In this document: positions 1 to 45,418 of the stretch, piece after piece | Layout of the letters: the number at the start of each line of letters is the position of its first letter | How positions within the stretch are numbered: the first letter of the stretch is position 1 | Source: Paramoeba atlantica | Taxonomy: Eukaryota > Protista > Discosea | Direction of reading: 5' to 3' | Length of the DNA stretch: 64,000 nt | Assembly (NCBI GenBank): GCA_977017575.1 | Contig: CDRNVI010000002.1 | Coordinates: 558,001-622,000 of the forward strand | Notes under the pieces: generated by a model | What the model was told of the DNA's origin: nothing | Databases searched by the model: none | The model's input: the letters and a program-made list of their open reading frames with translations, nothing else | Translations under genes and position numbers: made by a program

Positions 1-795
1 GATGCCAGAACCAGAGCCAGATGGGTTTCCCAAACGGGGAATGGCGCATCGGAGTGGGCGTTCGTAACCCCATCAAAGAACAACGGTCATGCGTTCACCC
101 CCACCGAATTTCGCATCCTAACCCGGTGGTGGCTCGGTAACGACGTTTACCCAAAGGCCAGGCCCTGTCCTATGGACAAATGTGGATTGCCATTGGGCCC
201 TGAAGGAGACCACGCCCTTTCTTGTAAGAGTGGGCACGGTATCATTGCCCGACACAACGCTCTCGCTCGACAATTTTCCCTAGACTGCAACAGGTCTGGG
301 CTGACAACGAAGCGTGAAGTCAGCCTAGATAATACGGGCCCAGGGGGTGGTCGGACCCGACCGGCCGATGTGTTTATTAAAGAGTTTTGCCTTGGCCAGG
401 GTCTGGTCCTTGATTTCGCCGTCACCAATGTTCAGCAAACGAAGTATACGGACTTGGTCCGTGATGCTAACTTGGTTGAGGCGGGATCCTTCGCCGAAAG
501 ATACGCGACAGAGCATAAGCAGAAACAAAGGGAAGAAGCCGAAGCGGCCAAGCTCAGATTCGCCGCCATGGCTGTCGAATCGTATGGATCTTGGTCCCCA
601 AGCGCTATGGCCGTCATTCGAGATTTATCGGTCAACCGGTCACTCCAATCCGCGAACCTATCCAAAGCAGACGCATTACACGCACTGTTAACTGCCCTGA
701 ACATTACCTTGATGAGATCACAAGCGCGAATGATGGTGCTGCGCTCTCCTCCCACCCCCGATTCAGACCTCGTAGGCTACGGCTCCGAGCTTTGA
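1..795 (+). CDS. C-terminal part (zinc knuckle + RLE endonuclease) of CRE-clade non-LTR retrotransposon ORF, family A2; runs off left edge
   Basis: Frame open from base 1. Motifs CPMDKC..HALSC, RHN, RPADVF, LDFAVT, VESYG. Near-identical to 5476-6030 + 10817-11056. Confidence 0.9.
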   Translation, partial: DARTRARWVSQTGNGASEWAFVTPSKNNGHAFTPTEFRILTRWWLGNDVYPKARPCPMDKCGLPLGPEGDHALSCKSGHGIIARHNALARQFSLDCNRSGLTTKREVSLDNTGPGGGRTRPADVFIKEFCLGQGLVLDFAVTNVQQTKYTDLVRDANLVEAGSFAERYATEHKQKQREEAEAAKLRFAAMAVESYGSWSPSAMAVIRDLSVNRSLQSANLSKADALHALLTALNITLMRSQARMMVLRSPPTPDSDLVGYGSEL

Positions 796-1265
796 GAACT
801 ACGTGATTCTCGCCCCCCCCCCATTCACCAGCCTGAACCCGTCGGGTGTTGGTCGAGTCGGCAGGACCTATACTCACACCTAGCCCCCGTCGGCTAGGTA
901 CCCCAAGTGAGGTAGTGCCCGGGGAGGGGACCCTGCCCCTCCCCGTCGGCCACCACCTGGTTCTGTGACTGTTCCGCTGCCGGCGGAGGCCCATTGCTTG
1001 CGCCCTCTCGTACAACAAGAGCAGGGTTACCAAGGCAAGCTGGGAGAGGTCGAAAGACCCGGTCCAGAACACGTAAGGAAGGTTTTCCCTGGGCCGACTC
1101 CTAGCAAAAGCGCAGGGAGTCCTCAACCTCCCCAATGAGTTTGGAAGTCGAGTGAGGAAAGCGAAGGGAAGTAAAGGAAAGGAACGAAAAGGAAAAGCAA
1201 AGGGAGGTAAAGAAAGGGAGGTAAAGGAAGTAAAAGGAAAGAAAGAAGTCGTGAAAAAAAAAAAA
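796..1265 (+). other. Family A2 3' UTR (divergent structured core 845-1070, purine-rich end) and poly(A)
   Basis: Follows the ORF stop and ends in A12. Repeated at 11057-11540. Confidence 0.85.
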
Positions 1266-1366
1266 TAGAATATATTTTAGAAGTATTCTACTCCATTAAA
1301 AACGTACTGTTGCATCGGTTCTTTGCCTATATCCTTGAACGTTACTAAAAAAAAAAAAAAAAAAAA

Positions 1367-3078
1367 GTGTCCTTTGGATGATGTTTCCAGGTCCCAGGCA
1401 CAGCGACTGAAGAAACATGGGGGATTTGGCATTCGTTCATCCGAGCTACATGCCTCCGGGGCTTATATTTCTTCAGTGACATTCGGCGCCAAGCAAGACT
1501 CCTGGGAACCGCAAGGAGCAGAAGGTTTCGAAGATGCAGTTCATGACTTCAACAACGCACTAGGCATCACGGTACTTGACCGGACCACAGGATCTATCAC
1601 CAACAGCCAACAAGATAATCGCCCAACGAGTAACGACATCGAGGCGGATTTACCGGAAGGAACCTATGCCTCGGAGAAATACACAGTACCACGGCAAAAA
1701 CAGTTAAGCCACATTATTTCAGAACACGAATTCGGGCAAGCATTTTACAACGCAGACATTAAGACCCGAACTCGCTGGATTTCACAGTCTGGCAAGGGAG
1801 CTGGGGACTGGGCATTTTCCACTCCATCCAAAGACCTTGGTTTTGCTTTCACACCAGCTGAATTCCGCGCACTGGTAAGGTGGTGGCTCGGAGCACAACT
1901 TGTACCCAGCGTCCAACCATGTCCCATGGAAAAATGTAAAATGTCTATCGGACTCGATGGGGACCACGCTCTAGTGTGCAAATCTGGACATGGCATCATG
2001 GCACGACATAACTCTCTTTGTCTACAGTTTGCGCAAGAGTGTAGTAAGGCGCAGCTGGCTCCTCAGAGGGAAAAGACGCTAGGAAATCATGGTCCGGGAG
2101 GCGGCTTGACACGACCAGGTGACGTTTACTTGCCAAACTATGACCTTGGCACAGCTCTCGTCCTTGACTTCGCAGTTACACATGTCCAGCAAAACAAATA
2201 TACGGACTTAGTCCGAACTGCTACATGGGTAAAGGCGGGGTCATTCGCCGAGCGCTACGCCTCGGAACATAAAATATCGGAGAGAGCAGAAGCTGTCGCT
2301 GCTGGTCACCGTTTTGAAGCGATGGTTGTAGAATCTTTTGGATCCTGGTCCAAAAGTGCCCTGACCATCATAAAAAGCGTCGGGAAACACCGAGCTTCAA
2401 CCTCTAATGGGACTTTGAGCCATGCACAGGCCACAGCACAACTCATAAGGGGTATGAACATAGCCCTCATGCGTTCACAGGCACGGATGTTGGTCCGACG
2501 TCTCCCGGATGAAGATCCCACTGGCCAACTCGTCACACATGACGACCGGCTGGATTCATTCCGAACTGGTCGTTTGCGCCCATGAACATCTGGTCGGGAT
2601 GCTGGTCGGGTCGACAGAGTCTATGCTCACGCCTAGCCCGCGAGGGCTAGGTACCCCAAGTGAGGTAGTACACGGGTAGTGAATCTCCTCCCCGTCGACC
2701 AGCATCCTGTTTCGCGACCGTGTCGCTGTCGACACAGGCCCGCGCCTGCGCCCTCCCATATAGCAAGGGAAGGGTTCACAAGTCAGGCCGTGGTGAGGTC
2801 GAAAGACCCGGTCCGGGACGCGCGAATGGATTGGGTCTGTATTGCTTGTTTTAGTTTTTACTGTTTCTTGTTTGTAGTATATACTTAGGGGAGATTAAAT
2901 TGCTAGTTTTGGGCTGAGAGAAAAAAACAAAAGGTACATCTGTGGAAACAAAAAGATTTGCTAATTTGATTGCTTATTTTCAACTCGTATACCCCCCCCA
3001 ATGGACCTACTTGGTTCGTCTACTGGGTCAAAATATAGAGGCAATGCCGCGATTCATACTTCTCCCCCCTTATTAATT

Positions 3079-3109
<31 letters not shown>
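1367..3109 (+). mobile_element. 5'-truncated CRE-clade element, family A1 (ORF remnant 1367-2585, common 3' UTR, poly(A))
   Basis: GGFGIRS, RWISQSGKG, RHN, RPGDVY, LDFAVT motifs. A20 on the left and A29 on the right. Confidence 0.9.
2597..2819 (+). ncRNA. Conserved structured RNA core of group-A 3' UTRs (exemplar copy; function unknown)
   Basis: Helices 2597-2607/2697-2707, 2621-2630/2660-2668, 2632-2651 (GCGA loop), 2709-2720/2809-2819 and GGUC-GAAA-GACC. Compensatory changes between variants. Confidence 0.7.
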
Positions 3110-3402
3110 CGCGCGAATGGATTGGGTCTGGATTGCTTGTTTTTATTTTTACTGTGTCTTATTTGTCGTATATACTTAGGGGAGATTGAATTGCTAGTTT
3201 TGGGCTGAGAAAAAAGAAAAAGAAAATATACTTCTGTGGAAATGAAAAGAATTGCTAATTTGGTTGCTTGTTTTAAATTCATATACCCCCCTAATGGACC
3301 TACTATGTACTTGGTTCGTCTACTGGGTCAAAATATAGAGGCAATGCCGCGATTCATACTTCTCCCCCCTTATTAATTGCAAAAAAAAAAAAAAAAAAAA
3401 AA
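3110..3402 (+). mobile_element. Tail-only (5'-truncated) group-A copy
   Basis: Distal common 3' UTR plus A22, directly after the previous poly(A). Confidence 0.9.
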
Positions 3403-6030
3403 CACATCCCAAATTGCTGCAAGGCGGAATGGTCTCGAGTGTTTACCTCATGCTTGAATGCAGCCATGCTGGATAACACGTTGGAGGCTTGGACCCGCCT
3501 CGCTATGCTTCCTAAATGCGTACTCCCAGCCCCACACCGGGGCGGTAGCGGGAACAAAACCTCTTATGCGTCTTTCGTTCGTAAAAGCCTAGCTAGATGG
3601 AACCAACAAGAGTATTCGTCCCTCTGGAGCGACGCCATATCCAGTCTACGGCGCAAACGCAAACCCCAGACCCAGGCATCCAGTTTAGAGGAAGACGAAA
3701 AAAGGGCAGCACTACGAGCTGAGCGACTCGTTCGAGACAGAGAACTGTCACGTGCCATGACAGCACTGACCTCCGAACCACTCGCTCCCAACGACGACGC
3801 CACATACGCCAAACTTGTAAGCAAACATCCCTCGCGACTAGCGGAAGAACGCCCGAATATTCAACCTTCCCCCCTCCCCGTGAATCCGCTAAAGGCCACA
3901 GAAGAAGACATAACCGCGGCTCTCTCAAGCTTCCACCGTGGCTCCTCCGGTGGGGCATTTGGCCTCCGGCCCGAGCACGTGCAAATTGCAACGGAATACC
4001 ACAACGACGAACGCACAAACCCCTTGGGAACACTTACGAAGTTTACGAACCATCTCCTTTCCGGGAGAGCCCCGGAGGAGGTCCAGCCATACTTCGCCGG
4101 AGGACGATTGTGCGCACTTCATAAGGGGGAGCACGATGTACGACCCATTGCTGCTGGAGAAACCCTCCGGCGCCTGGCAAGCAAAGTTGCATGTCTTTCC
4201 GTCAAAGAAAAAGCCCGAAAGCTCTTTAGTGGGCATCAGTTTGGTGTTGCCATACCAGCAGGGATCGACCGGGTCATACATTTGTGTCGTCTAACGATGG
4301 CGGAACACTGTGCCGACGAGGATTTTGTTTTCTGCATAGTTGACCTCCGGAATGCATTCAATCACGTGTCGCGTAACTGTTTTATTTCGCTTACACGCAA
4401 ACATTTTCCCGAACTCAGCGCCTTTGTCGAATGGTGCTACGCCACCGACAGTAGTCTCACGTTCGGGGATCGAACAGTCACCTCCTCCGAAGGTGTCCAA
4501 CAGGGAGATCCACTAGGTCCCTTCCTATTCTCCTTGGTAATGAAACAAGTATACCTAAAGATCCATGATGCGGCCCCAAAACTAGACTTAAACATGTGGT
4601 ATCTGGACGACGGAACTCTTTCGGGAAGATCTTCAGATGTAAGGCACGCGCTCGACGCAATTGCCATCGAAGGTCCCAAATGGGGATTACATCTTAACTC
4701 CTCCAAATGTGAACTCATTACCAATCCTGCGGCCTCGGATCGACTAGATCTCTTCCCAGATATTCCGGGTCTAAACAAGAAGTCGGAAGGCAACCTTGAC
4801 ATCCTAGGCAGCCCCATCGGATCCACGCCCCACTGTCGCCGATACCTTATAGACAACGCGGTCAGCCTAGCTGAGGAGTCCCTTGACGCGATCGAAAAGC
4901 TGGAAGATCCACAGGTAGCCTTATCTCTCATCCGTCATTGTACCGGATTCTGTCAAATGGTGCATACACTTCGAACTACACCCGCAACAGAGCTACAGGA
5001 CCTCTGCCAACGCCTAGATAATGCAGTCCAGCACGCAGCAGAGCGTTTCGTTGGTCCCTTGAGTGGCGCTGCTCGACGACAGGCGCAACGTGACAAGAGG
5101 TATGGGGGGTTTGGACTGCGCTCAGCGGAATCGCATGCCACATCAGCCTACGTATCGTCAGTCGCTTCCGCATCCTCTAAGGATCGTTGGGACCCAATGC
5201 AAGCCCAAGGCTTCGAGTCGGCAGTACGGGATGTGAATAGTCGTGCAGGATACGACCTCGTTTCTAACTCCGGGAGAATTATAAAGCCCCCTTCCCCCTC
5301 CTCACCGGAACAATCGTACCCCGAGAGCACACGCTCTGATGAAGATATCCCGGACGCAGCCCACCCAAGCGAATCACTTAACACAGAATCCCGCCCCAAA
5401 CTGGTAATCCCCCGCCAGCGCGAGCTAAGCCAGGCGATTTCCTCTCATGAATACGAGCTGGAATACGCGAAAGCTGATGCCAGAACCAGAGCCAGATGGG
5501 TTTCCCAAACGGGGAAAGGCGCATCGGAGTGGGCGTTCGTAACCCCATCAAAGAACAACGGTCATGCGTTCACCCCCACCGAATTTCGCATCCTAACTCG
5601 GTGGTGGCTCGGTAACGACGTTTACCCAAAGGCCAGGCCCTGTCCTATGGACAAATGTGGATTGCCATTGGGCCCTGAAGGAGACCACGCCCTTTCTTGT
5701 AAGAGTGGGCACGGTATCATTGCCCGACACAACGCTCTCGCTCGACAATTTTCCCTAGACTGCAACAGGTCTGGGCTGACAACGAAGCGTGAAGTCAGCC
5801 TAGATAATACGGGCCCAGGGGGTGGTCGGACCCGACCGGCCGATGTGTTTATTAAAGAGTTTTGCCTTGGCCAGGGTCTGGTCCTTGATTTCGCCGTCAC
5901 CAATGTTCAGCAAACAAAGTATACGGACTTGGTCCGTGATGCTAACTTGGTTGAGGCGGGATCCTTCGCCGAAAGATACGCGACAGAGCATAAGCAGAAA
6001 CAAAGGGAAGAAGCCGAAGCGGCCAAGCTC
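3403..6030 (+). pseudogene. RT to RLE portion of family A2 ORF (interrupted; last part at 10817-11056)
   Basis: RPIAAGETLRR, VDLRNAFN, GVQQGDPLGP, WYLDDG, RPADVF. Confidence 0.92.
6021..6030 (+). repeat. 10-bp target-site duplication GGCCAAGCTC (second copy 10807-10816)
   Basis: Identical 10-mer on both sides of the insertion. Single copy in the empty allele at 546-555. Confidence 0.92.
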
Positions 6031-10806: not shown

Positions 10807-11540
10807 GGCCAAGCTCAGATTCGCAGCCATGGCTGTCGAATCGTATGGATCTTGGTCCCCAAGCGCTATGGCCGTCATTCGAGATTTATCGGTCAACCGG
10901 TCACTCCAATCCGCGAACCTATCCAAAGCAGACGCATTACACGCACTGTTAACTGCCCTGAACATTACCTTGATGAGATCACAAGCGCGAATGATGGTGC
11001 TGCGCTCTCCTCCCACCCCCGATTCAGACCTCGTAGGCTACGGCTCCGAGCTTTGAGAACTACGTGATTCTCGCCCCCCCCCCCATTCACCAGCCTGAAC
11101 CCGTCGGGTGTTGGTCGAGTCGGCAGGACCTATACTCACACCTAGCCCCCGTCGGCTAGGTACCCCAAGTGAGGTAGTGCCCGGGGAGGGGACCCTGCCC
11201 CTCCTCGTCGGCCACCACCTGGTTCTGTGACTGTTCCGCTGCCGGCGTAGGCCCATTGCTTGCGCCCTCTCGTACAACAAGAGCAGGGTTACCAAGGCAA
11301 GCTGGGAGAGGCCGAAAGACCCGGTCCAGAACACGTAAGGAAGGTTTTCCCTGGGCCGACTCCTAGCAAAAGCGCAGGGAGTCCTCAACCTCCCCAATGA
11401 GTTTGGAAGTCGAGTGAGGAAAGCGAAGGGAAGTAAAGGAAAGGAACGAAAAGGAAAAGCAAAGGGAGGTAAAGAAAGGGAGGTAAAGGAAGTGAAAGGA
11501 AAGAAAGAAGTCGTGAAAAAAAAAAAAAAAAAAAAAAAAA

Positions 11541-11994
11541 CCCAAGTGAGGTAGTACACGGGTAGTGAATCTCCTCCCCGTCGGCCAGCATCCTGTTTCG
11601 TGACCGTGTCGCTGTCGACACAGGCCCGCGCCTGCGCCCTCCCACATAACAAGGGAAGGGTTCACAAGTCAGGCCGTGGAGAGGTCGAAAGACCCGGTCC
11701 GGAACGCGCGAATGGATTGGGTCTGGATTGCTTGTTTTTATTTTTACTGTGTCTTGTTTGTCGTATATACTTAGGGGAGATTGAATTGCTAGTTTTGGGC
11801 TGAGAAAAAAGAAAAAGAAAATATACTTCTGTGGAAATAAAAAGAATTGCTAATTTGATTGCTTGTTTTAAATTCATATACCCCCCTAATGGACCTACTA
11901 TGTACTTGGTTCGTCTACTGGGTCAAAATATAGAGGCAATGCCGCGTTTCATACTTCTCCCCCCTTATTAATCGAAAAAAAAAAAAAAAAAAAA
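11541..11994 (+). mobile_element. Tail-only group-A copy
   Basis: Common 3' UTR starting inside the structured core, with A-tracts on both sides. Confidence 0.9.
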
Positions 11995-12939: not shown

Positions 12940-12975
12940 CTTTAACGATAAAGATACAGTTTCTGTACCTTGTTG
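12940..12975 (+). other. Spliced-leader (mini-exon)-like sequence at 5' end of CRE A3
   Basis: CTTTAACGATAAAGATACAGTTTCTGTACCTTGTTG contains the ACAGTTTCTGTAC core of kinetoplastid/diplonemid SL exons and ends in TTG. No GT intron follows. Confidence 0.8.
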
Positions 12976-13012: not shown

Positions 13013-16000
13013 ATGCCGCCCGATGATTCCTTTGATGCCAACGCGTTACCAATGGATGATGACTCTTTTCGCCAGGAACAAATGTCACACAAACCCGGAG
13101 ATTGGGACCAATTCGCAGGAAACGCTCACCTGATTTCCGGCCAAAGCACCTACAATGAACTTTTGTATACGACACCTATCCCCGAAAACGTACCTAAACA
13201 CTGGACCGAAAGAGCCTACAAGATCGCGGCAGAGGAGCCTACACCGGACACAGGCAGAATGACCGCGGACGAAGAGACAAATCACTCCCTTGTCGTGGCA
13301 AACAACGTGGGAATTACTTTGGAGGCCTCATCCGCCCACATTTTCTCTCCAACTAAGGCTACAAAGCGCAAGAATACTGATTCTGCCCCTACCACATACC
13401 ACAACGCCAATACGCAGCAGAAGGATGTAGAACGTCAATGCCCAGCAGAAGGATGTACGTGGAAAACCCCACCACATAGCGGAAAATGGCAGGCATTTTA
13501 TCACCATGTAGCTCATCGACACGGCAAAAACATTCCAAACGAGTGGTGGGAGGGAGAGGGAAGATTCCTCTGCAGAGATTGTGGCAGACACTACGCCAAG
13601 AACAAGCTCAAGTCTCACCCCAAAAACTGCAGGGGCCGCAACAATTCCGGACGGTCATTAGCCCCACCAACGGCACGTCCCCAAAACGCAGAAGAAAATC
13701 CAACAGACAATTTGCCATCACTCGGCTCCATCTGCGCACTTCCCATGAGTACCTGCAAAGACGTTCCACACTGTTGCAGATTCCTCTGGGCGAGCATCCT
13801 CACGCAATCCTTGACATCCGCAGTGAAGGAAAACACGGTAGAGGCATGGACACTTCTCGCAATGCTCCCTAAGTGTGTCCTACCAGCACCTTTCCGAGGC
13901 GGTCGCAAAGGCCACACATCATACTCTACGTACGTCGAAAACCGCATGAAACTGTGGCTAGCGGGGGAGTACCTCTTGCTATGGGAAGATGCCCAGAGGG
14001 ATCATTATAAAAAGCGCTCCAGATCACGCGACTCCGAAATCGATGCAGACAGAGCGGCAATTCGAGCCGAACTCTTGGCCCGCCAGGGGGAATTTTCCAG
14101 GGGAATGGCAGCCCTAACCGCAGCCCCCATGGCGCCAGACAATGCAGATACCCTCGAAAAGCTCTTGGAGAAGCATCCAGACCCACACGAAAATCCCTTG
14201 CAGAATGATCTACCACCGATCGAGGGCAACCCCCTACACCTAGAGGAAACAGAGGTCAAAAAAGCGATCGTCAGCTTCCGCAGGGGATCTTCAGCCGGCA
14301 CGATGGGCCTTCGCCCAGAGCACCTCCAGGCAGCCATCTTGGAACATGTGGACAAGGATGTGAATCCTCTCTCGGCCCTCACGCGACTAGTGAACCACAT
14401 GCTTCAAGGAAAAGCGCCACAAGACGTCCAATCATTCTACGCTGGAGCCCGGCTCTGCGCCCTGGAAAAAGGCGAGGACGATGTTCGACCAATCGCAGCG
14501 GGTGAAACCCTTAGACGCCTCGTAAGCAAGGCGGCATGTATCTCGATAAAGGAGAAAGCGGGTACTCTGTTCAACGGGCGACAATATGGTGTAGCAGCCC
14601 CCGCGGGAGCCGAACGAGTTATCCACCTCTGCCGGAGAGCCATGCTCAATAACCTGGGGAGTGACAATTTTGTCTTCTGCAAAGTGGACTTAAGAAACGC
14701 TTTCAATAACGTCAGCAGGCCTGTTCTCACCCTAACCACGCGCTTAAATTTCCCCGAACTCTCACCTTGGGTAGAGTGGTGTTACTCCAACGTGAGCTGT
14801 CTTACCTACAGAGACAATGTCATACCCTCGGCAGAGGGGGTACAACAAGGAGACCCACTAGGCCCTCTTCTCTTCTCTCTAGTACTATCCAGTGTAACAG
14901 AAGAAATATCGTCTCGGTCGAATCTAGACACTCAACTTTGGTACCTAGATGACGGGGTACTCATAGGGGAGGCTGAGGAGGTCAGGAAGGCGCTCGATGT
15001 TTTTTCCAATGTTGGCTCCCGATGCGGACTTTTCCTAAACCCATCGAAATGTGAGATAATAACACCGCCTGCTTCATCCCATCTCACAGGATTATTTCCA
15101 GAGATACCGAAGACTAAAACTCGTACTGATGGAAATTTCGACATCTTGGGCTCCCCGATTGGGTCAGCGGAGCATTGCGTGGAGTTTCTCAGGTCAGAAG
15201 CCATTGAGCCCGCACGCGAAACATTAGACGCAATAGGTTTCATAGGAGACCCACAAGTAGCCATGTCCCTCATCCGGCAGTGCACTGGATTCTGTCAAAT
15301 GGTCTACGCACTTCGCACGACACCCCCTCAGGCGCTTTCTGAGCTTTGTAATTCCCTTGATGAAAATGTTCTAAAAGCCGCGGAATGGGCACTTTTCCCT
15401 CTGGATTCCCACGCGCGTGACCAAATCCAACGTAAGAAGCGCAACGGGGGTTTTGGTCTCAGGTCTTCGCTCCTCCACGCAACAGCAGCATATGTCTCCT
15501 CCGTTGCGCACGCCGCCGATGCAGACGATTGGGACCCTTCAGAAGCCGAGGGATTCACCATTTCCGTGCAAGACGTGAATAGAAAGGCGGGGGTAGAACT
15601 TGTGGATCCCGGTACAGGACGCATCCCGAAACAGAATAAACCACATCCAGAGTCCAGCCAAAGACACAACCTCACCTCGAGAAGCAAACGCCCACGACAC
15701 ATACTCAACAACATGGACGCGGATAAGACGGCCGAGCCGGAAATGGTTATACCCCGGCAGCAGCAACTGAGCCAAGCCATATCGCAGCAGGAATTCACTA
15801 CAGCCTACGGCCAGGCCGACCCCCGCACCCGAGCACGATGGGTTTCACAGTCAGGAAAGGGAGCTGGGAGCTGGGCCTTCGTCACGCCCTCAAGGAGTAA
15901 AGGTTTTGCTTTCACACCAACCGAGTTCCGCACGTTATCGCGCTGGTGGTTTGGCATGGACATTTATGGCCAAGACCGCCCCTGCACAGCAAACGGGTGT

Positions 16001-16603
16001 TCCCTACCCCTACAGAAAAATGGGGAGCATGCATTATTGTGCAAGAACGGACATGGCCTCATCACGCGGCACAATGCGCTTTGTGTAGAATTCGCCTCCT
16101 TTTGCAGCAAGGCCAACATGGCTCCCCAGCGAGAAAAAAGTCTAGGAAATCGGGGGCCAGGAGGGGGTCTCACCAGACCGGCTGACGTTTTCCTCCCCAC
16201 GTACACTCTAGGGAAAGGCATGGTACTAGACTTCGCAGTCACCCACGCACAGCAAACAAAGTATTTGGACTCTGTCCGGAATGCTAGCTGGGTGGCTGCA
16301 GGGTCTTTCGCCGAGCATTACTCAGAAACGAAGGAAAAACAACGTCAAGAAGCAGAAGAAGCACAACTAGGGTTCACGGCCATGGTTGTCGAGTCTTTTG
16401 GCTCGTGGAGTAAAAGCGCAATGGCGGTCTTATGGAAGGTGGGAGCACTGCGCGCCAACTCGTCAAAAGGTCTTCTCACGGATGCTCAAGCCCGAAATGA
16501 CCTTCTGAAAGAGCTTAACGTCACACTCATGCGCTCTCAGGCCCGCATGATGGTCTCCCGGATAGTCGTCAGTGACCCCCAAGCTCCCCTGGAAGGGGAG
16601 TAG
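13013..16603 (+). CDS. 1196-aa CRE polyprotein: two N-terminal zinc fingers, RT, zinc knuckle, RLE
   Basis: CPAEGC..HVAHRH, CRDC..H..C, GVQQGDPLGP, WYLDDG, CTANGC..HALLC, RPADVF, LDFAVT, VESFG. Confidence 0.93.
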   Translation: MPPDDSFDANALPMDDDSFRQEQMSHKPGDWDQFAGNAHLISGQSTYNELLYTTPIPENVPKHWTERAYKIAAEEPTPDTGRMTADEETNHSLVVANNVGITLEASSAHIFSPTKATKRKNTDSAPTTYHNANTQQKDVERQCPAEGCTWKTPPHSGKWQAFYHHVAHRHGKNIPNEWWEGEGRFLCRDCGRHYAKNKLKSHPKNCRGRNNSGRSLAPPTARPQNAEENPTDNLPSLGSICALPMSTCKDVPHCCRFLWASILTQSLTSAVKENTVEAWTLLAMLPKCVLPAPFRGGRKGHTSYSTYVENRMKLWLAGEYLLLWEDAQRDHYKKRSRSRDSEIDADRAAIRAELLARQGEFSRGMAALTAAPMAPDNADTLEKLLEKHPDPHENPLQNDLPPIEGNPLHLEETEVKKAIVSFRRGSSAGTMGLRPEHLQAAILEHVDKDVNPLSALTRLVNHMLQGKAPQDVQSFYAGARLCALEKGEDDVRPIAAGETLRRLVSKAACISIKEKAGTLFNGRQYGVAAPAGAERVIHLCRRAMLNNLGSDNFVFCKVDLRNAFNNVSRPVLTLTTRLNFPELSPWVEWCYSNVSCLTYRDNVIPSAEGVQQGDPLGPLLFSLVLSSVTEEISSRSNLDTQLWYLDDGVLIGEAEEVRKALDVFSNVGSRCGLFLNPSKCEIITPPASSHLTGLFPEIPKTKTRTDGNFDILGSPIGSAEHCVEFLRSEAIEPARETLDAIGFIGDPQVAMSLIRQCTGFCQMVYALRTTPPQALSELCNSLDENVLKAAEWALFPLDSHARDQIQRKKRNGGFGLRSSLLHATAAYVSSVAHAADADDWDPSEAEGFTISVQDVNRKAGVELVDPGTGRIPKQNKPHPESSQRHNLTSRSKRPRHILNNMDADKTAEPEMVIPRQQQLSQAISQQEFTTAYGQADPRTRARWVSQSGKGAGSWAFVTPSRSKGFAFTPTEFRTLSRWWFGMDIYGQDRPCTANGCSLPLQKNGEHALLCKNGHGLITRHNALCVEFASFCSKANMAPQREKSLGNRGPGGGLTRPADVFLPTYTLGKGMVLDFAVTHAQQTKYLDSVRNASWVAAGSFAEHYSETKEKQRQEAEEAQLGFTAMVVESFGSWSKSAMAVLWKVGALRANSSKGLLTDAQARNDLLKELNVTLMRSQARMMVSRIVVSDPQAPLEGE

Positions 16604-17160
16604 GGCCCACAGGCATGGTCCTCTAGGGTAACAAGACGATTAGGGTGCTGGTCGCGTCGACAGAGTCTATACTCACGCCTAGCTCGCGAGGGCTAGGTAC
16701 CCCAAGTGAGGTAGTACACGGGCAGTGAATCTCCTCCCCGTCGGCCAGCATCCTGTTTCGCGACCGTGTCGCTGTCGACACAGGCCCGCGCCTGCGCCCT
16801 CCCATATAACAAGGGAAGGGTTCACAAGTCAGGCCGTGGAGTGGTCGAAAGACCCGGTCCGGAACGCGCGAATGGATTGGGTCTGGATTGCTCGTTTTTA
16901 TTTTTACTGTGCCTTGTTTGTCGTATATACTTAGCGGAGATTGAATTGCTAGTTTTGGGCTGAGAAAAAAAAAGAAAAAAAAAAGAAGAAGAAAAAAGAA
17001 AAAGAAAATATACTTCTGTGGAAATAAAAAGAATTGCCAATTTGATTGCTTGTTTTAAATTCATATACCCCCCTAATGGACCTACTATGTACTTGGTTCG
17101 TCTACTGGGTCAAAATATAGAGGCAATGCCGCGATTCATACTTCTCCCCCCTTATTAGTT

Positions 17161-17194
<34 letters not shown>

Positions 17195-17196
<2 letters not shown>

Positions 17197-17949
17197 CAAC
17201 AAGGCACGAATGCTTGTAAGACGCATGGCAGACGTGGATATCCATGCCAGTCTCGCTTTACTGAACGAGGCACCCTCTGACACCACACCAAATCGTGCCA
17301 GCTGCGGACCGGCAGGAGCGATCGAGCCTACAGTGCCTATTCTCACGCTTCGCCTTCGTGAGTGAGGTACCCCAAGGTGAGATAGGTAGGGATTCGGACT
17401 GACAGTCCTATTTCAGCACGAAGACGCCATGGTATCCAGGACGGGTGCTGGTCGGGTCGACAGAGTCTATACTCACGCCTAGCCCGCGAGGGCTAGGTAC
17501 CCCAAGTGAGGTAGTACACGGGTAGTGAATCTCCTCCCCGTCGGCCAGCATCCTGTTTCGTGACCGTGTCGCTGTCGACACAGGCCCGCGCCTGCGCCCT
17601 CCCATATAGCAAGGGAAGGGTTCACAAGTCAGGCCGTGGAGTGGTCGAAAGACCCGGTCCGGAACGCGCGAATGGATTGGGTCTGTATTGCTTGTTTTAG
17701 TTTTTACTGTTTCTTGTTTGTAGTATATACTTAGGGGAGATTAAATTGCTAGTTTTGGGCTGAGAAAAAACAAAAGGTACATCTGTGGAAACACAAAGAT
17801 TTGCTAATTTGATTGCTTGTTTTCAACTCGTATACCCCCCCAATGGACCTACTTGGTTCGTCTACTGGGTCAAAATATAGAGGCAATGCCGCGATTCATA
17901 CTTCTCCCCCCTTATTAACTGCAAAAAAAAAAAAAAAAAAAAAAAAAAA
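17195..17949 (+). mobile_element. Chimeric truncated copy: last codons and start of 3' UTR of another group-A family (17195-17400) joined to the A4 tail
   Basis: KARMLVRR matches the QARMLVRR C-terminus. Variant GGTACCCCAAGGTGAGATAG. 17398 onward matches 21838 onward. Confidence 0.75.
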
Positions 17950-17985
17950 CTTTAACGATGAAGATACAGTTTCTGTACCTTGTTG
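17950..17985 (+). other. SL exon-like sequence at 5' end of CRE A4
   Basis: One A>G difference from 12940-12975. Confidence 0.8.
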
Positions 17986-21831: not shown

Positions 21832-22362
21832 GCCTCTACTGACAGTCCTATTTCAGCACGAAGACGCCATGGTATCCAGGACGGGTGCTGGTCGGGTCGA
21901 CAGAGTCTATGCTCACGCCTAGCCCGCGAGGGCTAGGTACCCCAAGTGAGGTAGTACACGGGTAGTGAATCTCCTCCCCGTCGGCCAGCATCCTGTTTCG
22001 CGACCGTGTCGCTGTCGACACAGGCCCGCGCCTGCGCCCTCCCATATAGCAAGGGAAGGGTTCACAAGTCAGGCCGTGGAGTGGTCGAAAGACCCGGTCC
22101 GGAACGCGCGAATGGATTGGGTCTGTATTGCTTGTTTTAGTTTTTACTGTTTCTTGTTTGTATTATATACTTAGGGGAGATTAAATTGCTAGTTTTGGGC
22201 TGAGAAAAAACAAAAGGTACATCTGTGGAAACACAAAGATTTGCTAATTTGATTGCTTGTTTTCAACTCGTATACCCCCCCAATGGACCTACTTGGTTCG
22301 TCTACTGGGTCAAAATATAGAGGCAATGCCGCGATTCATACTTCTCCCCCCTTATTAACTGC

Positions 22363-30654: not shown

Positions 30655-31010
30655 CTCCTCTTTCTCACCTCTTGACATACTTTTCCCACCTTTCTCCCTA
30701 CTTTCCTGCTTTCCCCTACCCAACTTTTCAACTTTTCAGGGGGGGTAAGGTCTCCCTCAGCTTCGCCTCACCCGGCCTGCAGGCGGCTCCTCAACCATTC
30801 GCGCGTTCCGGACCGGGTCTTTCGACCTCTCCACGGCCTGACTTGTGGACCCTTCCCTTGTTATACGGGAGGGCGCAGGCGCGGGCCTGTGTCGACAGCG
30901 ACACGGTCGCGAAACAGGATGCTGGCCGACGGGGAGGAGATTCACTACCCGTGTACTACCTCACTTGGGGTACCTAGCCTTGACGGACTAGGCGTAGAGG
31001 CCTTTTAGAG
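30627..31010 (-). mobile_element. Tail-only group-A variant (common core + different purine-rich distal end) with poly(A)
   Basis: Core matches 2632-2830 and diverges after GCGCGAATGG. Ends in a long T-run on the plus strand at 30621-30654. Confidence 0.85.
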
Positions 31011-31614
31011 CGTAGAGGCCTTTTATTTTTTTATTTGGGAAGACGTTTTTTTTGCAATTAATAAGGGGGGAGAAGTATGAATCGCGGCATTGCCTCTATA
31101 TTTTGACCCAGTAGACGAACCAAGTACATAGTAGGTCTATTAGGGGGGTATATGAATTTAAAACAAGCAATCAAATTAGCAATTCTTTTCATTTCCACAG
31201 AAGTATATTTTCTTTTGCTTTTTTCTCAGCCCAAAACTAGCAATTCAATCTCCCCTAAGTATATACGACAAATAAGACACAGTAAAAATAAAAACAAGCA
31301 ATCCAGACCCAATCCATTCGCGCGTTCCGGACCGGGTCTTTCGACCACTCCACGGCCTGACTTGTGAACCCTTCCCTTGCTATACGGGAGGGCGCAGGCG
31401 CGGGCCTGTGTCGACAGCGACACGGTCACGAAACAGGATGCTGGCCGACGGGGAGGAGATTCACTACCCGTGTACTACCTCACTTGGGGTACCTAGCCCT
31501 CGCGGGCTAGGCGTGAGTATAGACTCTGTCGACTCGACCAGCATCCCGACCAGCTCTTCATGGGCGCAAACGTGTTCCCGTGCCAAAAGGGGCGCGGTCG
31601 ACGTTTACGAACGT

Positions 31615-34600
31615 TTACACCTCCGTAGGAGAGAGCGGATCCTCAGGAAGTAAACGAGTAACCATCATGCGCGCCTGAAGGCGCATGAGGGTGACGTTCA
31701 GCTCCGTAAAGATTCTGCTCGTGGCTTCCCCTTCTGTCAATAACCCACACGAGGCATGTGAGAGACGTTCCCCAACTTTGCGGATCACTGCTGAAGCACT
31801 GGGGCTCCAGGCGCCATAGCTTTCGACCACCATGGCCGTAAAGTCACACCCGGCGTCAACGGCTTCCCGGCGCTGCCTACCCTTCTCCATGGAGGAATAA
31901 TGCTCGGCAAACGACCCCGCGGTTACCCAGCTAGCGTTCCGGACTTTGTCCGTATATTTTAGTTGCTGAGCATGGGTGACCGCGAAGTCAAGCACGATGG
32001 GATTCCCCAAGAAAAGACTGCGCAGGTATACGTCGCCAGGTCTGGTGAGGGCCCCCCCTGGGCCTCTGTTGCCAAGACTTTTCTCCCGTTGTGGGGACAG
32101 TTTGGCTCTGCTGCAAAGGTCCGTGAACTGATCTGCCACGGCATTGTGCCTCGCGATAATTCCGTTGTCGTGCTTGCAAGACAATGCGTGGTCCCCTTTT
32201 GTGTCGAGTGGAAGAGGGCATTTCGGCATAGGACACTTCCCTTCTTCAGGGTAAACATCGATCCCTAACCACCAACGGGCCAAGGTTCGAAATGCTGTAG
32301 GGGTAAAGGAATACCCCATGTCCTTAGACGGGGTTACAAAAGCCCAGCTGCTTGCCCCTTTACCGCACTGAGATATCCATCGTGCTCGTGTCCGCACATC
32401 TGACATTTCGTATGATTGGGAGAAATCGTGGGCCGCGATCGCGTAGCTGATGTCTCGCTGGCGAGGGATCTTCCCTTTCAACCATTGCGGGGGGGTCGTA
32501 TCAGCACAATCCTCCGAGGCGTACAGCGGTGTAGAAAAGTGTATTTCCTCAGGTGTATGCATGGTGCGGGAAGTTATGCGCAGGGGTAGGCAGATCTCCG
32601 AGGGAGGCTGATCGATGACACCTAGGGGGCGTTTCCTCTTTCTATGGGAGAAAGGGCTGCCAACTGCTTTTTCGCAAGGGGCGTTCGGCGCTGTGAGGAT
32701 ACGGCCTCGCGAGTCAAGTAAAGATATTCCGGCCTTCTTGTTGATATCCCTGACAGCTTCCGCGAATCCATCTGCGTCAGTGGGGTTCCATGAGTCTCTG
32801 GCCGCACAGAAAGCGACGGAAGATACGTAGGCGGCCGTGGCATGCAACGCTGCGGACCTTAATCCAAAACCGCCGTGCCGCTTCAAACGCTGTACCTGAG
32901 ATCGCGCGTGGCGATCCAGGGGGCAAATTATTGCTTCGGTAGCAGTCATAAGAAAGCCGTCGAGTCGGGTGCATAGATGGGTTATGGCTTGGGGCGGTGT
33001 ACTTCTCAGAGCGTACACCATCTTGCAAAACCCAGCACACTGTCTGATAAGGGCAAGTGCGACCTGTGGGTCCCGGATGGTGGCTATCGCGTCAAGCGTG
33101 TCCTCCGCGGGGCCTATGGCATGTGTCTCGAGGTACTCTGAGCAATGTTCTGGCGATCCCACCGGGCTCCCAAGGATGTCGAAATTGCCGTGGACATTGA
33201 TCTTATTGGAGGGGATATCTGGAAATTCGGAGGCGTGGTGTGCCGATGCCGGGGGTGTAACGATCTCACATTTAGACATGTTAAGATGTAAACCCCATTG
33301 TGGACCTACTCGGGCAATCGTGTCGAGGGCGTTCCTAACGTCTTGCGCTTGTCCAATGAGGACGCCGTCATCGAGGTACCATAACTGGGCAAAGAGGTTA
33401 GCCTGAAGAGCAATTGCTTCTGCGAGCGCTAAGGACACTAGCGAGAAGAGTAGCGGTCCTAAAGGGTCGCCCTGTTGCACTCCCTCTTCAGAAGAAAGTG
33501 ATCGGAGTCCATAGGTGAGGGAGCTGGGGTTCGAGTAACACCAGCTTATCCATGGGAATAGCTCTGGGAAGTGCTCTTGGACTAGAGGAAGAAAACAAGT
33601 CCTGCTCACGTTGTTGAAAACGTTCCGTAGGTCAACTTTGCAGAGTACAAAGTTGGAGCAGTCCATGTTTGATGAGATGGCCAAGCGGCACATGTGGATA
33701 ATGCGTTCATTCCCAGCTGGGGTAGCCACACCAAATTGCCGTCCTGCAAAAAGAGTTCTAGCCTTGGACCTGACTGCGTTGCATGCAGCCTTGCTCACTA
33801 ACCGTCGCAAAGTTTCCCCGGCGGCAATTGGGCGAACGTCGTTTTCACCTTTCTCTAGGGCACACAGTCGGGCTCCCGCAAAGTGACTCTGTACTTCCTT
33901 TGGTGCTTTTCCTGCGAGGAGATGATTAGCGAGCTTCGTAAGGGATTCGAGTGGGTCTGTGTTCTTGCCTCCGTGGGTAAGGAGCGCTGCCTGTAAATGC
34001 TCGGGGCGTAATCCCAAGGTACCCGCGGAGGAGCCTCTGTGAAAGCCCTTGATTGCCTTCGCGATTTCAGATTCATCCAACTCCAGGGGCTCTGCTGCGG
34101 GGAAAAAGTTGGCGGCCCCCGGAACGAGCAAACGGCAGGGGTGCTTTTCTTGTAATTTAGAGAATGTGTCGTCGTCGTCCGGAGCCATGGGGTCTGACGT
34201 TAGAGCAGCCATGCCTCTGGAATATTCTCCCTGTCGAGCAAGGAGTTCTGCCCTTAGTGCTGCTTTTTCATCTTCATCACTATCCTCGGTAGGAGTTACT
34301 TTCTTTTTGCGGTAGTTCGTCGTGGCCTCTTGCCATAGGGAGGAATAATCCAACGCAAGCCAACGCTGCATGCAACTGTAGGCGTGGGAAGCGTAAGCCA
34401 TGTGACCTTTGCGTCCTCCACGGCGCGGGGCGGGAAGGACACATTTAGGCAACATGGCCAACAAGGTCCATGACTGCAGCGTATTTTCTTTGACGGCGTT
34501 ATCCATGGCCTCTGTAAGAATTTCGCCCCACAACTGGCGGCATCGATGCGGTACGTCTTTGCACGTACTAAGGGGTAGTGAGCAGATATTGGATAAAGAT

Positions 34601-35607
34601 GGAAGCTCGAGCTGCGTGGTTCCATCCACCAGGGTGGGGCTGTCTTCCTCAGAAAGGGTTTCGGCGTGAGGTTCGGGTAGTGAGGAGGCCTTTGTTGCTT
34701 GGCAGCTATGAGAGTGAGATGAACGCTTGCTTTTATCATAGTTACGCCCGCAAGAGGAACATACGAAGCGACCCTCCCCCTCCCACCACTCTGCAGGAAT
34801 GCTGCTTCCATGCCGGCAAGCGACGTGGTTATAGAAAGCTTGCCACGACCCGCCATGCGGTAAGCTCCGCCATGAGCATCCCTGGGCTGGGCACTCTCGA
34901 GCGTCGACCCTATTGCAGGGTAGGGGTGTATCTTGTGAGCTGGTGGGGCCATGTTCCAGTTGTTTTTGACTCACTTCCGCTGAGTCAACGTCTTCTTCAC
35001 ACCTGTTAGCTGGGAACGTTCCTTGTTGCTGCGACAGCGGGAAATAAGGGGGAGTTTGTTCGTGAACGGCGGTCCCAGCGGATGGATCGAGCTCCATTGC
35101 AGGAGAATCTCCTCTATCGCATGGGTCCTTGTCGTGTGCCCTAAGGTCCGACGCTTCGCCTCTAATGGGCGTGGTTTTCTCTCGCGTCTTGGTGGTTTTT
35201 ATGATGCCTCGAATATGTCCTTTAGCGCAGGGAGGTATAGTGGTTACTCGACGTCGAGAGAACTTCCTTGCGACAGAATCCTTTTCAGACTGTGGTGATT
35301 GGGTGTTGTGATCTGGGCCGATAAGCACACGAGAGTGATTTGATTCTTCATCGCTGCCATCTTCGCGTCCTGTATCAGGCGTCGGTTTTTCGTGGGAAAT
35401 CAAAGCAGCATTTTTGCACCAGTCATGAGGAATATTCGCAGGTATAGGAGTTGTGTATAGTAGTTCATTGTAGGTACTCGGCTGTTTAATGAGATGCGCA
35501 TTACCCGCGAACTGGTCCCAGGATCCTGTTTTATGAGTCGCCTCCTAATGCAAAAACGAATCGTCATCCATAGGAGATGGCTCTTCAAAGTGGTCTTCGC
35601 CTGACAT
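31615..35607 (-). pseudogene. CRE A5 polyprotein; ATG at 35607, premature TAG at 35545-35547, otherwise open
   Basis: N-terminus MSGED..PMDDDSFL..WDQFAGNAHLI matches A3 and A4. Zinc-finger, RT and RLE motifs intact. Confidence 0.9.
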
Positions 35608-35692: not shown

Positions 35693-36165
35693 TTTTTTTT
35701 TTTTTTTTTTTTGCAGTTAATAAGGGGGGAGAAGTATGAATCGCGGCATTGCCTCTATATTTTGACCCAGTAGACGAACCAAGTAGGTCCATTGGGGGGG
35801 AATACGAGTTGAAAACAAGTAAATTTTTTTTTTTATATGATTTTAAAACAAGCAATCAAATTAGCAATTTCATATTTTGGAGCCCAAAACTAGCAATTCG
35901 ATCTCCCGTAAGTATAAGAACATTAAAAACAATAACAATAAAAACAAGCAATATATGCCCAATCCATTCGCGCGTTCCGGACCGGGTCTTTCGACCTCTC
36001 CACGGCCTGACTTGTGAACCCTTCCCTTGTTATATGGGAGGGCGCAGGCGCGGGCCTGTGTCGACAGCGACACGGTCGCGAAACAGGATGCTGGCCGACG
36101 GGGAGGAAGTTTTAGTTCCCGACCCATGTCCTACCTCACTTGGAGTACCTAGCCCTTGAGGGCGA
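35693..36165 (-). mobile_element. Tail-only group-A variant copy
   Basis: Common core with a variant hairpin (GGGAA/TTCCT), common distal end, poly(A). Confidence 0.85.
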
Positions 36166-40189: not shown

Positions 40190-40367
40190 TAATAGTCCAC
40201 GTTTTGAAATTTACCCGAGGGGCTGTTATGTATTTGCCTGCTGGCCCTTCGGGGCACATAATTTCTTCAAATTATGATTTGTGTTCTATAATTACATGGA
40301 TTGGATATTCTACTATTTCTTATATATCCTTGTTAGGTTGTTAGTCGTACTACGTTTAAGTTTTTGT

Positions 40368-41771
40368 ATGAGATCCCAACGATTGCGGGCTCCGTCGGAG
40401 CCACGACAGGAGCGCGATAGATCACCGAAGCGGAATAGGGCGCCGACACCCATTCAGACCTCCTCTTTCCAAGACCATTCCAAGCGTCAGTCCCTTTCGT
40501 GCCCTCCCGTGCGCCCCCCTCTCCCTCCTCTCCCCACGCAGCCGGCTCCGCAGGTATCCGCGCGACCTCCTCCGATTCCCCCTACTCCTGTCCCAGCGCG
40601 CCGAAAGGTACGCCCTTCTGGTAGAGCGCTCAGCCCCGCCCGCGAACCGCCTAGCCCTCTCCCTTCCAACCTTCCCAGTTTGCCTGCGAGCTCCCTCCCT
40701 AGCCCGTACCCATTTCCGCTGGAGGCTCCCGAGCCCCATATGCGACGAAGAGGAACCCTTAACCCTGACCAGGTTGAGGCTTCTCGCTCGCCGCGCCGTT
40801 ACGAGGCCCTTGACATTGACCACGTCGAGTTGCCTCAGCGTTCACGCTGTGATGCGCGTGGGATCATGACACAATCCAGCAAAGAAGAGTTCATCACGAA
40901 AGTAATTGAGCTTCTGCGCAAGGACTATGAGGTCACCGTCGAGGCTGTATGGTCCCTTCCCCGTGACGGCCTACGGCAGACGGTTATAGGGTTGGTGCAT
41001 ATGACGCATCCTAAGGACCCTAACTCAACTGAGTTGTTCGCCGAGTGGGATGGGGACAAGAACACTGCCTACCGTTTTCCCCATCCCGAGATCAACTACC
41101 ACTCTTTGGAACTGGCCCATGTTCGGGCGCAGATGCCGGGTGGGAAACCAGTTGAAGATCTGATCCCCACTTTTGAACGCGTCCGTATTACGGACCCGAA
41201 AGGCTTCTCCCCCTACGATCCGGTTACTTGGCAACCGTGGATCGACACGGATGATTTGTTCAAGCCACGTGAACTCATCCGTGAGCTGCGCGAATCTCCG
41301 CAGCTTGGGGTACGCTTCAACCCGCCGCCGCAGCGTGAGCGCCTGTTTAAAATGTTAACTGAATGGGTGTACGCTGCGTGTAATACGGAGGGATGGCTAG
41401 AGAAGCACAACCTCGCCGTAGCCCTTCTCATCATCGAAGAGCTTCGCAACCATTATTGGGCTGCGGCGGGCGTTGCTGTCGAGCGTGTGCAACAGCGTTT
41501 GCACCGTGACGACGACCCTCAGGACCGCTATGGTCAGCTTGTTGTGGACGAGCAACTGAGGGGCCGAACCGCTCAGCGTGCTCCCCGCCGACGAACCCAG
41601 GCGCCATATTGCTTCGCGTGCCACCAGTCTGGCCACTTCCGCTCAAACTGTCCCCAATCATCTCAACACCAAGGGGGACAGTTCCGCAGCCAACGAACCC
41701 CAGCCCAGGATTTTCGAGGCGGGGTGGTGGGCGGCGCCAACCGTTACGGCGCAACACGGGCTTTCCACTAG
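40368..41771 (+). CDS. Gag-like protein with CCHC knuckle (Y2); start codon uncertain
   Basis: CFACHQSGHFRSNC. VTVEAVW..YRFPH..DPVTW..RELIRELR shared with Y1 gag. Confidence 0.85.
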   Translation: MRSQRLRAPSEPRQERDRSPKRNRAPTPIQTSSFQDHSKRQSLSCPPVRPPLPPLPTQPAPQVSARPPPIPPTPVPARRKVRPSGRALSPAREPPSPLPSNLPSLPASSLPSPYPFPLEAPEPHMRRRGTLNPDQVEASRSPRRYEALDIDHVELPQRSRCDARGIMTQSSKEEFITKVIELLRKDYEVTVEAVWSLPRDGLRQTVIGLVHMTHPKDPNSTELFAEWDGDKNTAYRFPHPEINYHSLELAHVRAQMPGGKPVEDLIPTFERVRITDPKGFSPYDPVTWQPWIDTDDLFKPRELIRELRESPQLGVRFNPPPQRERLFKMLTEWVYAACNTEGWLEKHNLAVALLIIEELRNHYWAAAGVAVERVQQRLHRDDDPQDRYGQLVVDEQLRGRTAQRAPRRRTQAPYCFACHQSGHFRSNCPQSSQHQGGQFRSQRTPAQDFRGGVVGGANRYGATRAFH

Positions 41772-44644: not shown

Positions 44645-45418
44645 GGGACAGGATCACCAAATACAAAAAAAAAACAAGAAAAGAAAAAAAAAGAAAAAAA
44701 ACAAAGACAAGAAAAAAAGAAAAAAAACAAAGACAAAAAAAAAAAAAAAAAAAAAAAGCGGACGGGGTCCTGGGGTATGGAGGTTGTCCCTATAATTTTG
44801 GAAGGTTATGGATGTTAATCGGTTAACAGGTCTTTATTCTCACTCCTTGTTTTTTCGGAAGCAAGGTTCCCCAATGTGAGGTAGGGATGAGTAAAGGTTT
44901 CCTTTGCACTACGGTTAGCGCCTTAATGTTTTTAGCCGCGTCACTGTTGACACGGCCCTACGCATCACGCCTAGTTGCTCCACACTTCTAGGTACACAAG
45001 TTGGTCTAGGGCAGAGGATAAAAACGTAACCTGCGTAGCTCGTGTGAGCTTGTAAAGGGCGTGGCAGTGGACTGGTCATCTATTGCTATCGTTATCCTTT
45101 TGTGAGTTCTGGGATGGTATATGAAAAATTATTTTACTATGTGATTGGGCATTTCTTTTGTTTATTTATATTGATTGTGTGACGTGTGTGTGGGCAGGTT
45201 GGCCGAGGGTTCCGGTGGGGGGAACCCCGTTAACAACGTGACATATGATTTTTGGTTTTATGCAGGCTTTCTTTTGAACGAGGTATAAGCGTGTGAATTC
45301 TATCTACTATACGTTCTTGGATTTCGGGACGATTTGGATGTGTGATTATATTAGTCATAGTTGTTTACTTATATTTGTTTGTTTACGTATATGTTTTCAT
45401 GGAGCCCCTCGGCGTGGA

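Follow-up and report, generated by a model that had tools for sequence, protein, structure and literature searches.

A covarying two-domain RNA module behind the stop codons of CRE/SLACS-clade retrotransposons in Paramoeba atlantica

Introduction

To our knowledge, R2 is the only case in which structured 3′ UTRs that choose the template for target-primed reverse transcription (TPRT) are understood in detail. Another endonuclease lineage that branched early is the CRE/SLACS clade. Stringent-type LINEs share 3′ stem-loops with partner SINEs, as in the tail of the eel pair UnaL2/UnaSINE1. For TPRT, the R2 protein selects its template by binding a structured 3′ UTR, part of which is pseudoknotted; two stem-loops add to the affinity, and the pseudoknotted element initiates TPRT (PMC11194090, PMC12222951, PMC10499050).

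Here we analysed a window of 64,000 nucleotides from a P. atlantica contig. Long ORFs in this window, which we assign below to CRE elements, are followed by a structured RNA module. Like the R2 3′ UTR (R2_retro_el), it is a ~250-nt multi-helix element in a single-ORF, restriction-like-endonuclease (RLE) non-LTR retrotransposon, and covariation maintains its fold as the sequence drifts from one lineage to the next (PMC11194090, PMC12222951, PMC10499050). The two RNAs differ in that no sequence or covariance-model similarity connects them, and no conserved pseudoknot was found in the CRE module. R2 RNA ends its element, whereas the CRE module is followed by a 180-290-nt tail and poly(A). The CRE targets are A-rich tracts, whereas R2 targets rDNA.

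The UnaL2/UnaSINE1 tail resembles the module as a 3′ RNA structure acting as an exchangeable ticket, which lets different RNAs use one RT; the CRE module is common to several autonomous families with different ORFs and tails. Unlike the short single stem-loops of the UnaL2 type, which lie at the very 3′ end, it measures ~225 nt, comprises two junction domains and is internal to the UTR, and it has no SINE partner in the sequences examined. With the trypanosomatid elements CRE1, CRE2, SLACS and CZAR and the Diplonema SLACS-like ORFs, the elements of the window have in common an RT with a C-terminal restriction-like endonuclease and poly(A) tails. As in the spliced-leader-associated CRE/SLACS elements, full-length copies begin with spliced-leader-like sequence. 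In contrast to CRE1/CRE2/SLACS/CZAR, which lie in spliced-leader genes, insertions here are found in the poly(A) tails of other copies, and the Diplonema locus and the metagenomic relatives that we fetched are without the module. We found no published description of a structured 3′ UTR in CRE/SLACS elements.

Results

Retroelements of the window

The window is densely filled with retroelements. The long ORFs adjoining the modules contain RVT_1, and their best named relative is the "SLACS 132 kDa protein" of Diplonema papillatum (32% identity); closer relatives all come from a single ENA assembly, ERZ24900291. The C-terminal part of these ORFs, as read from the sequence, shows a CCHC and a PD-D/ExK-like pattern as in restriction-like endonucleases, and full-length copies open with a spliced-leader-like sequence (…CAGTTTCTGTACC…). 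On the basis of the RVT_1 domain, the SLACS relative, the spliced-leader-like starts and the C-terminal pattern, we assign the elements to the CRE/SLACS clade of (restriction-like-endonuclease) non-LTR retrotransposons.

Most CRE copies are 5′-truncated and chained head-to-tail within the poly(A) tails of older copies. Poly(A) insertion sites were noted at 1355-1377, 3083-3110, 3381-3402, 11527-11540, 17163-17194, 17927-17950 and 49815-49825, and the target preference seems to be for A-rich tracts rather than spliced-leader genes. The spliced-leader-like start CTTTAACGAT(A/G)AAGATACAGTTTCTGTACC lies at 12940-12975 and 17951-17985, in both cases immediately 3′ of the preceding poly(A).

Copies of the module

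The module is about 225 nt long, consists of two domains and begins 11-48 nt 3′ of the stop codon in the RVT_1-bearing ORFs. A stop-codon readthrough signal was considered and rejected, since this variable spacing speaks against it. The reference copy, of the common type, spans 2597-2819 on the forward strand (blastn match 2597-2830) and begins 11 nt past the TGA at 2583-2585. About ten more copies were located in the window by blastn and two covariance models.

Two copies with both domains belong to the A2 type, which is 77% identical to the common type in blastn. One lies at 840-1077 on the forward strand (blastn match 840-1075), after an ORF with its stop at 793-795, and the second at 11102-11339 on the same strand (blastn match 11102-11337). 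In the poly(A) of an A2 element sits a forward-strand common copy (11541-11712, blastn match 11541-11716) that is 5′-truncated within the ACCCCAA loop. Complete common modules on the forward strand are found at 16643-16872 (blastn match 16643-16876), where the module belongs to a full-length element with the ORF 13013-16603, at 17443-17672 (blastn match 17443-17676) and at 21883-22112 (blastn match 21883-22116). On the reverse strand, a common module at 31317-31550 (blastn match 31546-31313(-)) lies 3′ of the ORF 31615-35403(-); it is accompanied by a copy whose domain 1 is damaged or truncated (30798-31024, blastn match 30999-30795(-)) and by one that is 5′-truncated in domain 1 (35967-36163, blastn match 36163-35963(-)). 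The covariance models added a more distant homologue with both domains, type D, at 44806-45032 on the forward strand.

All the copies listed in the original prediction were recovered by blastn, which also detected the last 41 nt of a module at 49826-49866 (forward strand). This piece forms the 5′ end of a heavily truncated copy, comprising tail and poly(A), in the poly(A) of another element. The "third variant" predicted at 17337-17390 is real, but it is a partial relic of domain 1 rather than a complete module. This relic (var3, 17320-17417, forward strand; covariance-model match, E 3.6e-4) keeps the P2 hairpin and its loop intact and has lost the 3′ strand of P1 and the entire domain 2. It lies directly upstream of, and is fused to, a complete common module, and a second example occurs at L001:13796-13893.

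The distance from module to poly(A), put at 250-280 nt in the original prediction, covers a wider range, with about 180 nt in A2 and up to about 290 nt elsewhere. The final 25-30 nt ahead of the poly(A) are alike in the common tail (3050-3082, …ACTTCTCCCCCCTTATTAATTGC) and the L001b tail (L001 2340-2375, …ACTCTTCCCCCCCTATTATCTGC), while the rest of the two tails differs; the similar ends may be a second, terminal signal.

Architecture of the RNA

Domain 1 (reference 2597-2707) is a three-way junction of a closing stem P1 (2597-2609/2695-2707), a long arm P2a-P2b-P2c and a hairpin P3, all on the forward strand. The arm is built from P2a (2619-2624/2665-2671), P2b (CUCAC/GUGAG, 2626-2630/2660-2664) and P2c (2631-2639/2644-2652), and it bears a one-sided loop of 7-8 nt, (U/A)CCCCAA, which in the reference is the conserved, unpaired ACCCCAA at 2653-2659. 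P3 (2673-2679/2688-2694) is variable: its sequence and length differ in each lineage, yet it is always a hairpin.

Domain 2 (reference 2709-2819, forward strand) is a four-way junction. P4 (2709-2714/2814-2819) and P5 (2716-2719/2810-2813) close it; from the junction extend the hairpin P6 (2720-2725/2730-2735), a long arm of P7 (2739-2742/2789-2793), P8 (2744-2748/2784-2788) and P9 (2750-2757/2767-2775) with a conserved unpaired CAAG, and the hairpin P10 (GGUC-GAAA-GACC, 2797-2808), which reads GGUC-GARA-GACC across lineages.

Most of the helices proposed at the outset stand, namely CTAT-N-CTCAC/GTGAG-RTAG, GTTTCG/CGGAAC versus GTTCTG/CAGAAC, GCCTG/CAGGC versus GCTTG/CAAGC, and CCC/GGG versus CTC/GAG. 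The GTGTCG/CGACAC hairpin (P6) is likewise retained, and in A2 a register-shifted hairpin of other sequence, TTCCGC/GCGGAG, takes its place. The GGTC-GAAA-GACC helix was confirmed but is not invariant, as the loop reads GAGA in type C and the whole hairpin is missing from type D. The suggested pseudoknot between CCCAA and a downstream TTGGG is not conserved: this TTGGG is confined to the common tail, and the flanks of A2, L001b, type C and type D do not contain it. No other pairing partner was identified for the loop, which is nearly invariant; a GGAG in the domain-2 junction was tried and fits the L001b variant alone.

Single-sequence folds gave minimum-free-energy z-scores of -3.5 and -4.5 against shuffles, and the minimum-free-energy folds of domain 2 are concordant among A2, L001b and type C. 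When the type D copy L006:2150-2374 was folded without input from the model, P1, P2a-c, P3, P4/P5, P6 and P7-P9 were recovered (z -4.0); the copy of type D within the window shows more decay (z -1.4). G-U pairs are frequent, and the reverse strand scores 22 bits in the covariance model against 137 bits for the sense strand, which together indicate that the sense RNA is the folding strand. RNAalifold on a MAFFT alignment of two types offered an alternative pairing in domain 2 (columns 134-145 with 211-220). This pairing is broken in A2 and conflicts with the P6/P10 hairpins common to the minimum-free-energy folds of A2, L001b and type C, and it was discarded. A coding origin by way of the minus-strand ORF 11038-11652 was also rejected, since the substitutions follow the RNA pairing instead.

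Covariation between lineages

Further lineages were sought in contigs encoding relatives of the RT, with one covariance model for domain 2 (model "R1", 123 positions and 37 pairs) and one for domain 1 (model "R2", 118 positions and 40 pairs). This check, which had been proposed with the original prediction, brought up further lineages with compensatory changes. Five lineages are now distinguished: the common type, A2, the L001b mosaic, type C and type D. L001b (L001:1886-2126) has a domain 1 that resembles the common type and a P7-P9 arm identical to that of A2. Type C (L004:13226-13453) combines a strongly divergent domain 1 with a domain 2 that is 89% identical to the common one. The type D copies (window 44806-45032, L006:2152-2371 and L015:8600-8843) are AT-rich, with 39-42% G+C in domain 1; they retain ATNCTCAC…GGT(A/T)CCCCAA(T)GTGAG, the ACA junction motif, the P6 hairpin and the CAAG loop, and P10 is missing.

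In the domain 1 alignment (A8), 93.0% of the cells are paired and both sides have changed in 15 of the 40 pairs; none of 500 shuffles reached the observed value, and slid partners gave 0-8. The corresponding values for domain 2 (A9) are 96.1% and 20 of 37 pairs, again with 0/500 shuffles and with 1-4 for slid partners. Together, 35 of the 77 pairs carry changes on both sides, in alignments that are structure-aware, fitted to the covariance models with the type D alignment included, and that lean towards the model. A separate count over six representatives, one per lineage, gave 92-94% paired, 14 and 17 double-changed pairs, and 0-6 for slid partners. Counting each distinct pair state in these representatives a single time, we found 32 double changes that preserved the pair and 9 that disrupted it; some of the nine breaks are alignment artefacts (P6 of A2 and the tip of P9 in type D).

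The changes are apparent in individual helices. P4 occurs as GUUUCG/CGGAAC (common), GUUCUG/CAGAAC, CUUCG/CGAAG and GUUUUU/AAAAAC, and P2c as CCUAGCCC/GGGCUAGG (common) and CCUUGUUU/AAGCAAGG. P1 reads UGGUCG/CGGCCA in the common type and CGAUCG/CGAUC or UAAUCG/CGGUUA elsewhere. The covariation claimed for P1 was only partly borne out, as changes within group A are mostly one-sided or wobble, with a U-C mismatch in A2, and double changes appear with types C and D only. The independent lineages are few (about five), and certain helices are common to several of them through mosaicism. The independent fold of type D and the slid-partner controls indicate that the covariation signal is real. The evidence strongly supports a sense transcript able to form two independent multi-helix domains, a fold that selection has kept through compensatory substitutions.

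A conservation island exchanged between families

Among the elements with the common module, the 400 nt of coding sequence upstream are 50-77% identical and the next 250 nt downstream 42-95%, while the 234-nt module between them is 94-100% identical. Measured against one reference C-terminal domain, the families that bear the common module have 57-85% amino-acid identity, and those bearing type C, L001b and A2 have 64, 69 and 59% against the same domain. These identities overlap between bearers of differing modules, which indicates that the module type does not track the protein phylogeny. In the organism's DNA runs, the assembler depth is greater over the module than over the adjoining ORF, by a factor of roughly 30-145, and loose ends there link common-type sequence with domain 1 of type C, with the arm found in A2 and L001b, and with tails of type C or L001b. 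As the module is 94-100% identical next to such diverged coding ends, it is the unit that is retained, and it is swapped as a cassette between families whose proteins have diverged and whose distal tails differ. The sharp edges of this conservation island, the 35 of 77 double-changed pairs and the independent type D fold uphold the original view of a selected RNA element.

The ENA contig ctg3706c (L005, 18.5 kb) consists of tandem repeats spaced about 4.47 kb apart, in which the unit is a CRE ORF with two common modules; module starts lie at 326, 4205, 4789, 8681, 9264, 13151, 13735, 17621 and 18206. These paired modules were considered as SINE-like copies and are ordinary 5′-truncated copies instead. 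SINE-like stand-alone modules were absent from the window and the loci examined.

A homologue in a gag-pol element

The module had been ascribed to all group-A CRE families. This is true of every family sampled, but the module is also found outside CRE elements, since type D lies in the 3′ non-coding region of a gag-pol retroelement. The ORF pair of this element comprises a zinc-knuckle ORF (40281-41771) followed by an ORF (41609-44644) with weak RVT_1 and RT_RNaseH matches. The three type D copies have an A-rich tract and the module in common, with the tract preceding the module. In one gag-pol subfamily these belong to a segment of ~430 nt that runs from a short sequence ending …GGGACAGGATCACCAAATAC through the A-rich tract to the type D module (44645-45050; L006 2010-2380; L015 8475-8850; compare L014 8495-8540).

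In a relative with a 64%-identical pol protein, the stop codon joins directly to the sequence that follows the module elsewhere. The absence of the segment from this relative points to an insertion into the subfamily. In the simplest reading, a 3′ fragment from a further CRE-like lineage landed in an A-rich tract, was captured there as the type D segment and is now co-amplified. Type D serves as an outgroup and is no proof that gag-pol elements require the module.

Searches for known families and for the module elsewhere

The expectation that no known RNA family would match was confirmed. Rfam 15 gave no matches over the whole window at the gathering score; in E-value mode (E up to 10), positions 700-3500 gave chance-level matches only (E 0.27-7.7, well under gathering), and types D and C gave none or one chance-level match. 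The families covered include R2_retro_el and the HDV-like, hammerhead, twister, pistol and hatchet ribozymes, none of which matched. For a tRNA-like fold, ARAGORN reported 0 genes in 700-3500. As an RNA family the module is new; its presumed function belongs to a known kind.

The CRE group B element of the window (46582-49677) has a short UTR in which the module is absent, which fits clade-specific RNA-protein pairs. The module is also missing from foreign CRE relatives of ~30% identity, namely Diplonema papillatum (L003), a JGI contig (L008), a Logan contig (L009) and ENA contigs (L010-L012), of which L009 and L010-L012 hold just about 60-120 nt past the stop and are weak evidence of absence. 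The relative on the JGI contig has an AT-rich UTR after its ORF. In the Diplonema locus (L003 10770-11400), several hundred bases of CTG/CTT-rich microsatellite come after the SLACS-like ORF. A motif scan over metagenome contigs gave a sole match, L013, which has neither the hairpin nor a covariance-model score and is due to chance. None of the stretch was found in the assembler contigs of one RNA-labelled run.

Discussion

A role in template recognition

The module might be a cis-acting recognition site for the element's own reverse transcriptase, like the R2 3′ UTR, and we put the probability of this reading at about 0.5. It is the model that best accounts for the position after the stop codon, the clade-specific distribution and the cassette behaviour, given the precedent of R2, and of the three functions suggested at the outset (RT recruitment, stability and catalysis) it is the most plausible. 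The RT/endonuclease protein, newly released at the stop codon, would bind the module of its own mRNA, and this binding would provide both cis preference and assembly of the ribonucleoprotein. The particle would then nick A/T-rich DNA, which here is mostly the poly(A) tail of an older copy; the poly(A) of the RNA could pair with the nicked T-rich strand, and TPRT could start at the tail. Such a pathway would yield the 5′-truncated, head-to-tail copies found in the window. The invariant unpaired motifs, namely ACA in the domain-1 junction, CCCCAA and CAAG, might serve as protein or tertiary contacts.

Three observations count against RT recognition or constrain it. A tail of 180-290 nt separates the module from the poly(A), unlike the R2 element, which abuts the 3′ end. 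One module is common to proteins that are 57-85% identical at their C termini, which would call for either an RNA-binding surface conserved among them or activity in trans. Type D resides in a gag-pol element, for which TPRT use is not expected, though it looks like a captured insertion.

The same observations can be read in favour of a host-directed cis element, which would recruit a host factor or resist nuclease and so act in mRNA stability, export, localisation or translation, whichever RT is encoded. The same module is carried by families whose proteins have clearly diverged, a well-folded homologue survives in a gag-pol element of another class, and the great distance from the 3′ end is as compatible with an mRNA element as with a TPRT primer site. 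We regard this reading as a tentative second, because the absence of type D from the 64%-identical gag-pol relative makes it look like a passive insertion with no requirement behind it, because CRE group B and the foreign CRE relatives manage without the module, and because the RNA is without a match to known stability or export families.

A bolder proposal, which we hold to be unlikely, is that the module is a portable "retrotransposition passport". It would then represent a new large RNA class with tertiary contacts (the GNRA hairpin, CCCCAA and CAAG), recognised in trans by one dominant RT or host factor and spreading horizontally among unrelated classes (CRE, gag-pol and possibly RTE-type) by conferring mobility or protection.

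That the module is a catalytic RNA, self-cleaving or other, which would process the retroelement transcript, seems highly improbable. HDV-like ribozymes sit at R2 5′ ends, and this occurrence of ribozymes in other RLE elements, together with the large multi-junction fold, the GNRA tetraloop hairpin and the few invariant unpaired nucleotides, would speak for catalysis. Against it, no ribozyme family matched even at E up to 10, and the 5′ ends of truncated copies are scattered over query positions 30, 40, 59, 99, 152, 164, 176, 194 and 206, with no recurrent end of the sort that a discrete cleavage site would leave. The two copies starting at position 59 look like copies of one composite, to judge from partial matches at L002 2642-2785 and window 11502-11596. 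Type D also dispenses with P10 and its GAAA loop, and a cut in the 3′ UTR would part the ORF from the poly(A) and the template end.

The absence of any selected function, with the similarity due to recent descent, gene conversion or template switching and the fold incidental to G+C-rich sequence, could draw on the 94-100% identity of the common copies, which makes them uninformative on structure, on the frequent recombination that the mosaics reveal and on the fact that related sequences without structure can exceed shuffle controls, but it is hardly credible when 35 of 77 pairs are double-changed between lineages and still paired while slid partners, a control that preserves relatedness, give 0-8, when double changes in the six representatives kept the pair 32 times against 9 breaks, when P3 and P6 have been replaced by unrelated sequences that are still hairpins, and when an AT-rich homologue (39-42% G+C in domain 1) retains the fold.

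For RT recognition, the module and the CRE protein form a concrete RNA-protein candidate pair that bears on the evolution of template choice in RLE elements. The covariation record is unusually clear for a eukaryotic transposon RNA, and natural swaps of domains, hairpins and tails map the dispensable parts, namely P10 and the sequences of P3 and P6. The module shows how a 3′ cassette moves between families, and a poly(A)-targeting RT could be equipped with it as a compact recognition RNA; so far it is limited to one genome.

Further features of the CRE proteins

An ORF of 284 aa at 45342-46196 is 33% identical (E 6e-45) to residues 772-1020 of the group-B CRE protein (46582-49677), which are its C-terminal endonuclease part. 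This ORF has no RT part upstream and possesses its own poly(A) at about 46250-46345. Near the N-terminus of the protein encoded by 13013-16603, residues 44-91 show a weak match to LsmAD (Ataxin-2/Pbp1-type; E 0.008, under the Pfam cut-off). In precomputed Pfam annotations, PF06741 LsmAD is present for the relative P0014 and, weakly, for one gene in locus L007. If real, the match could tie the CRE protein to poly(A)-bound mRNPs.
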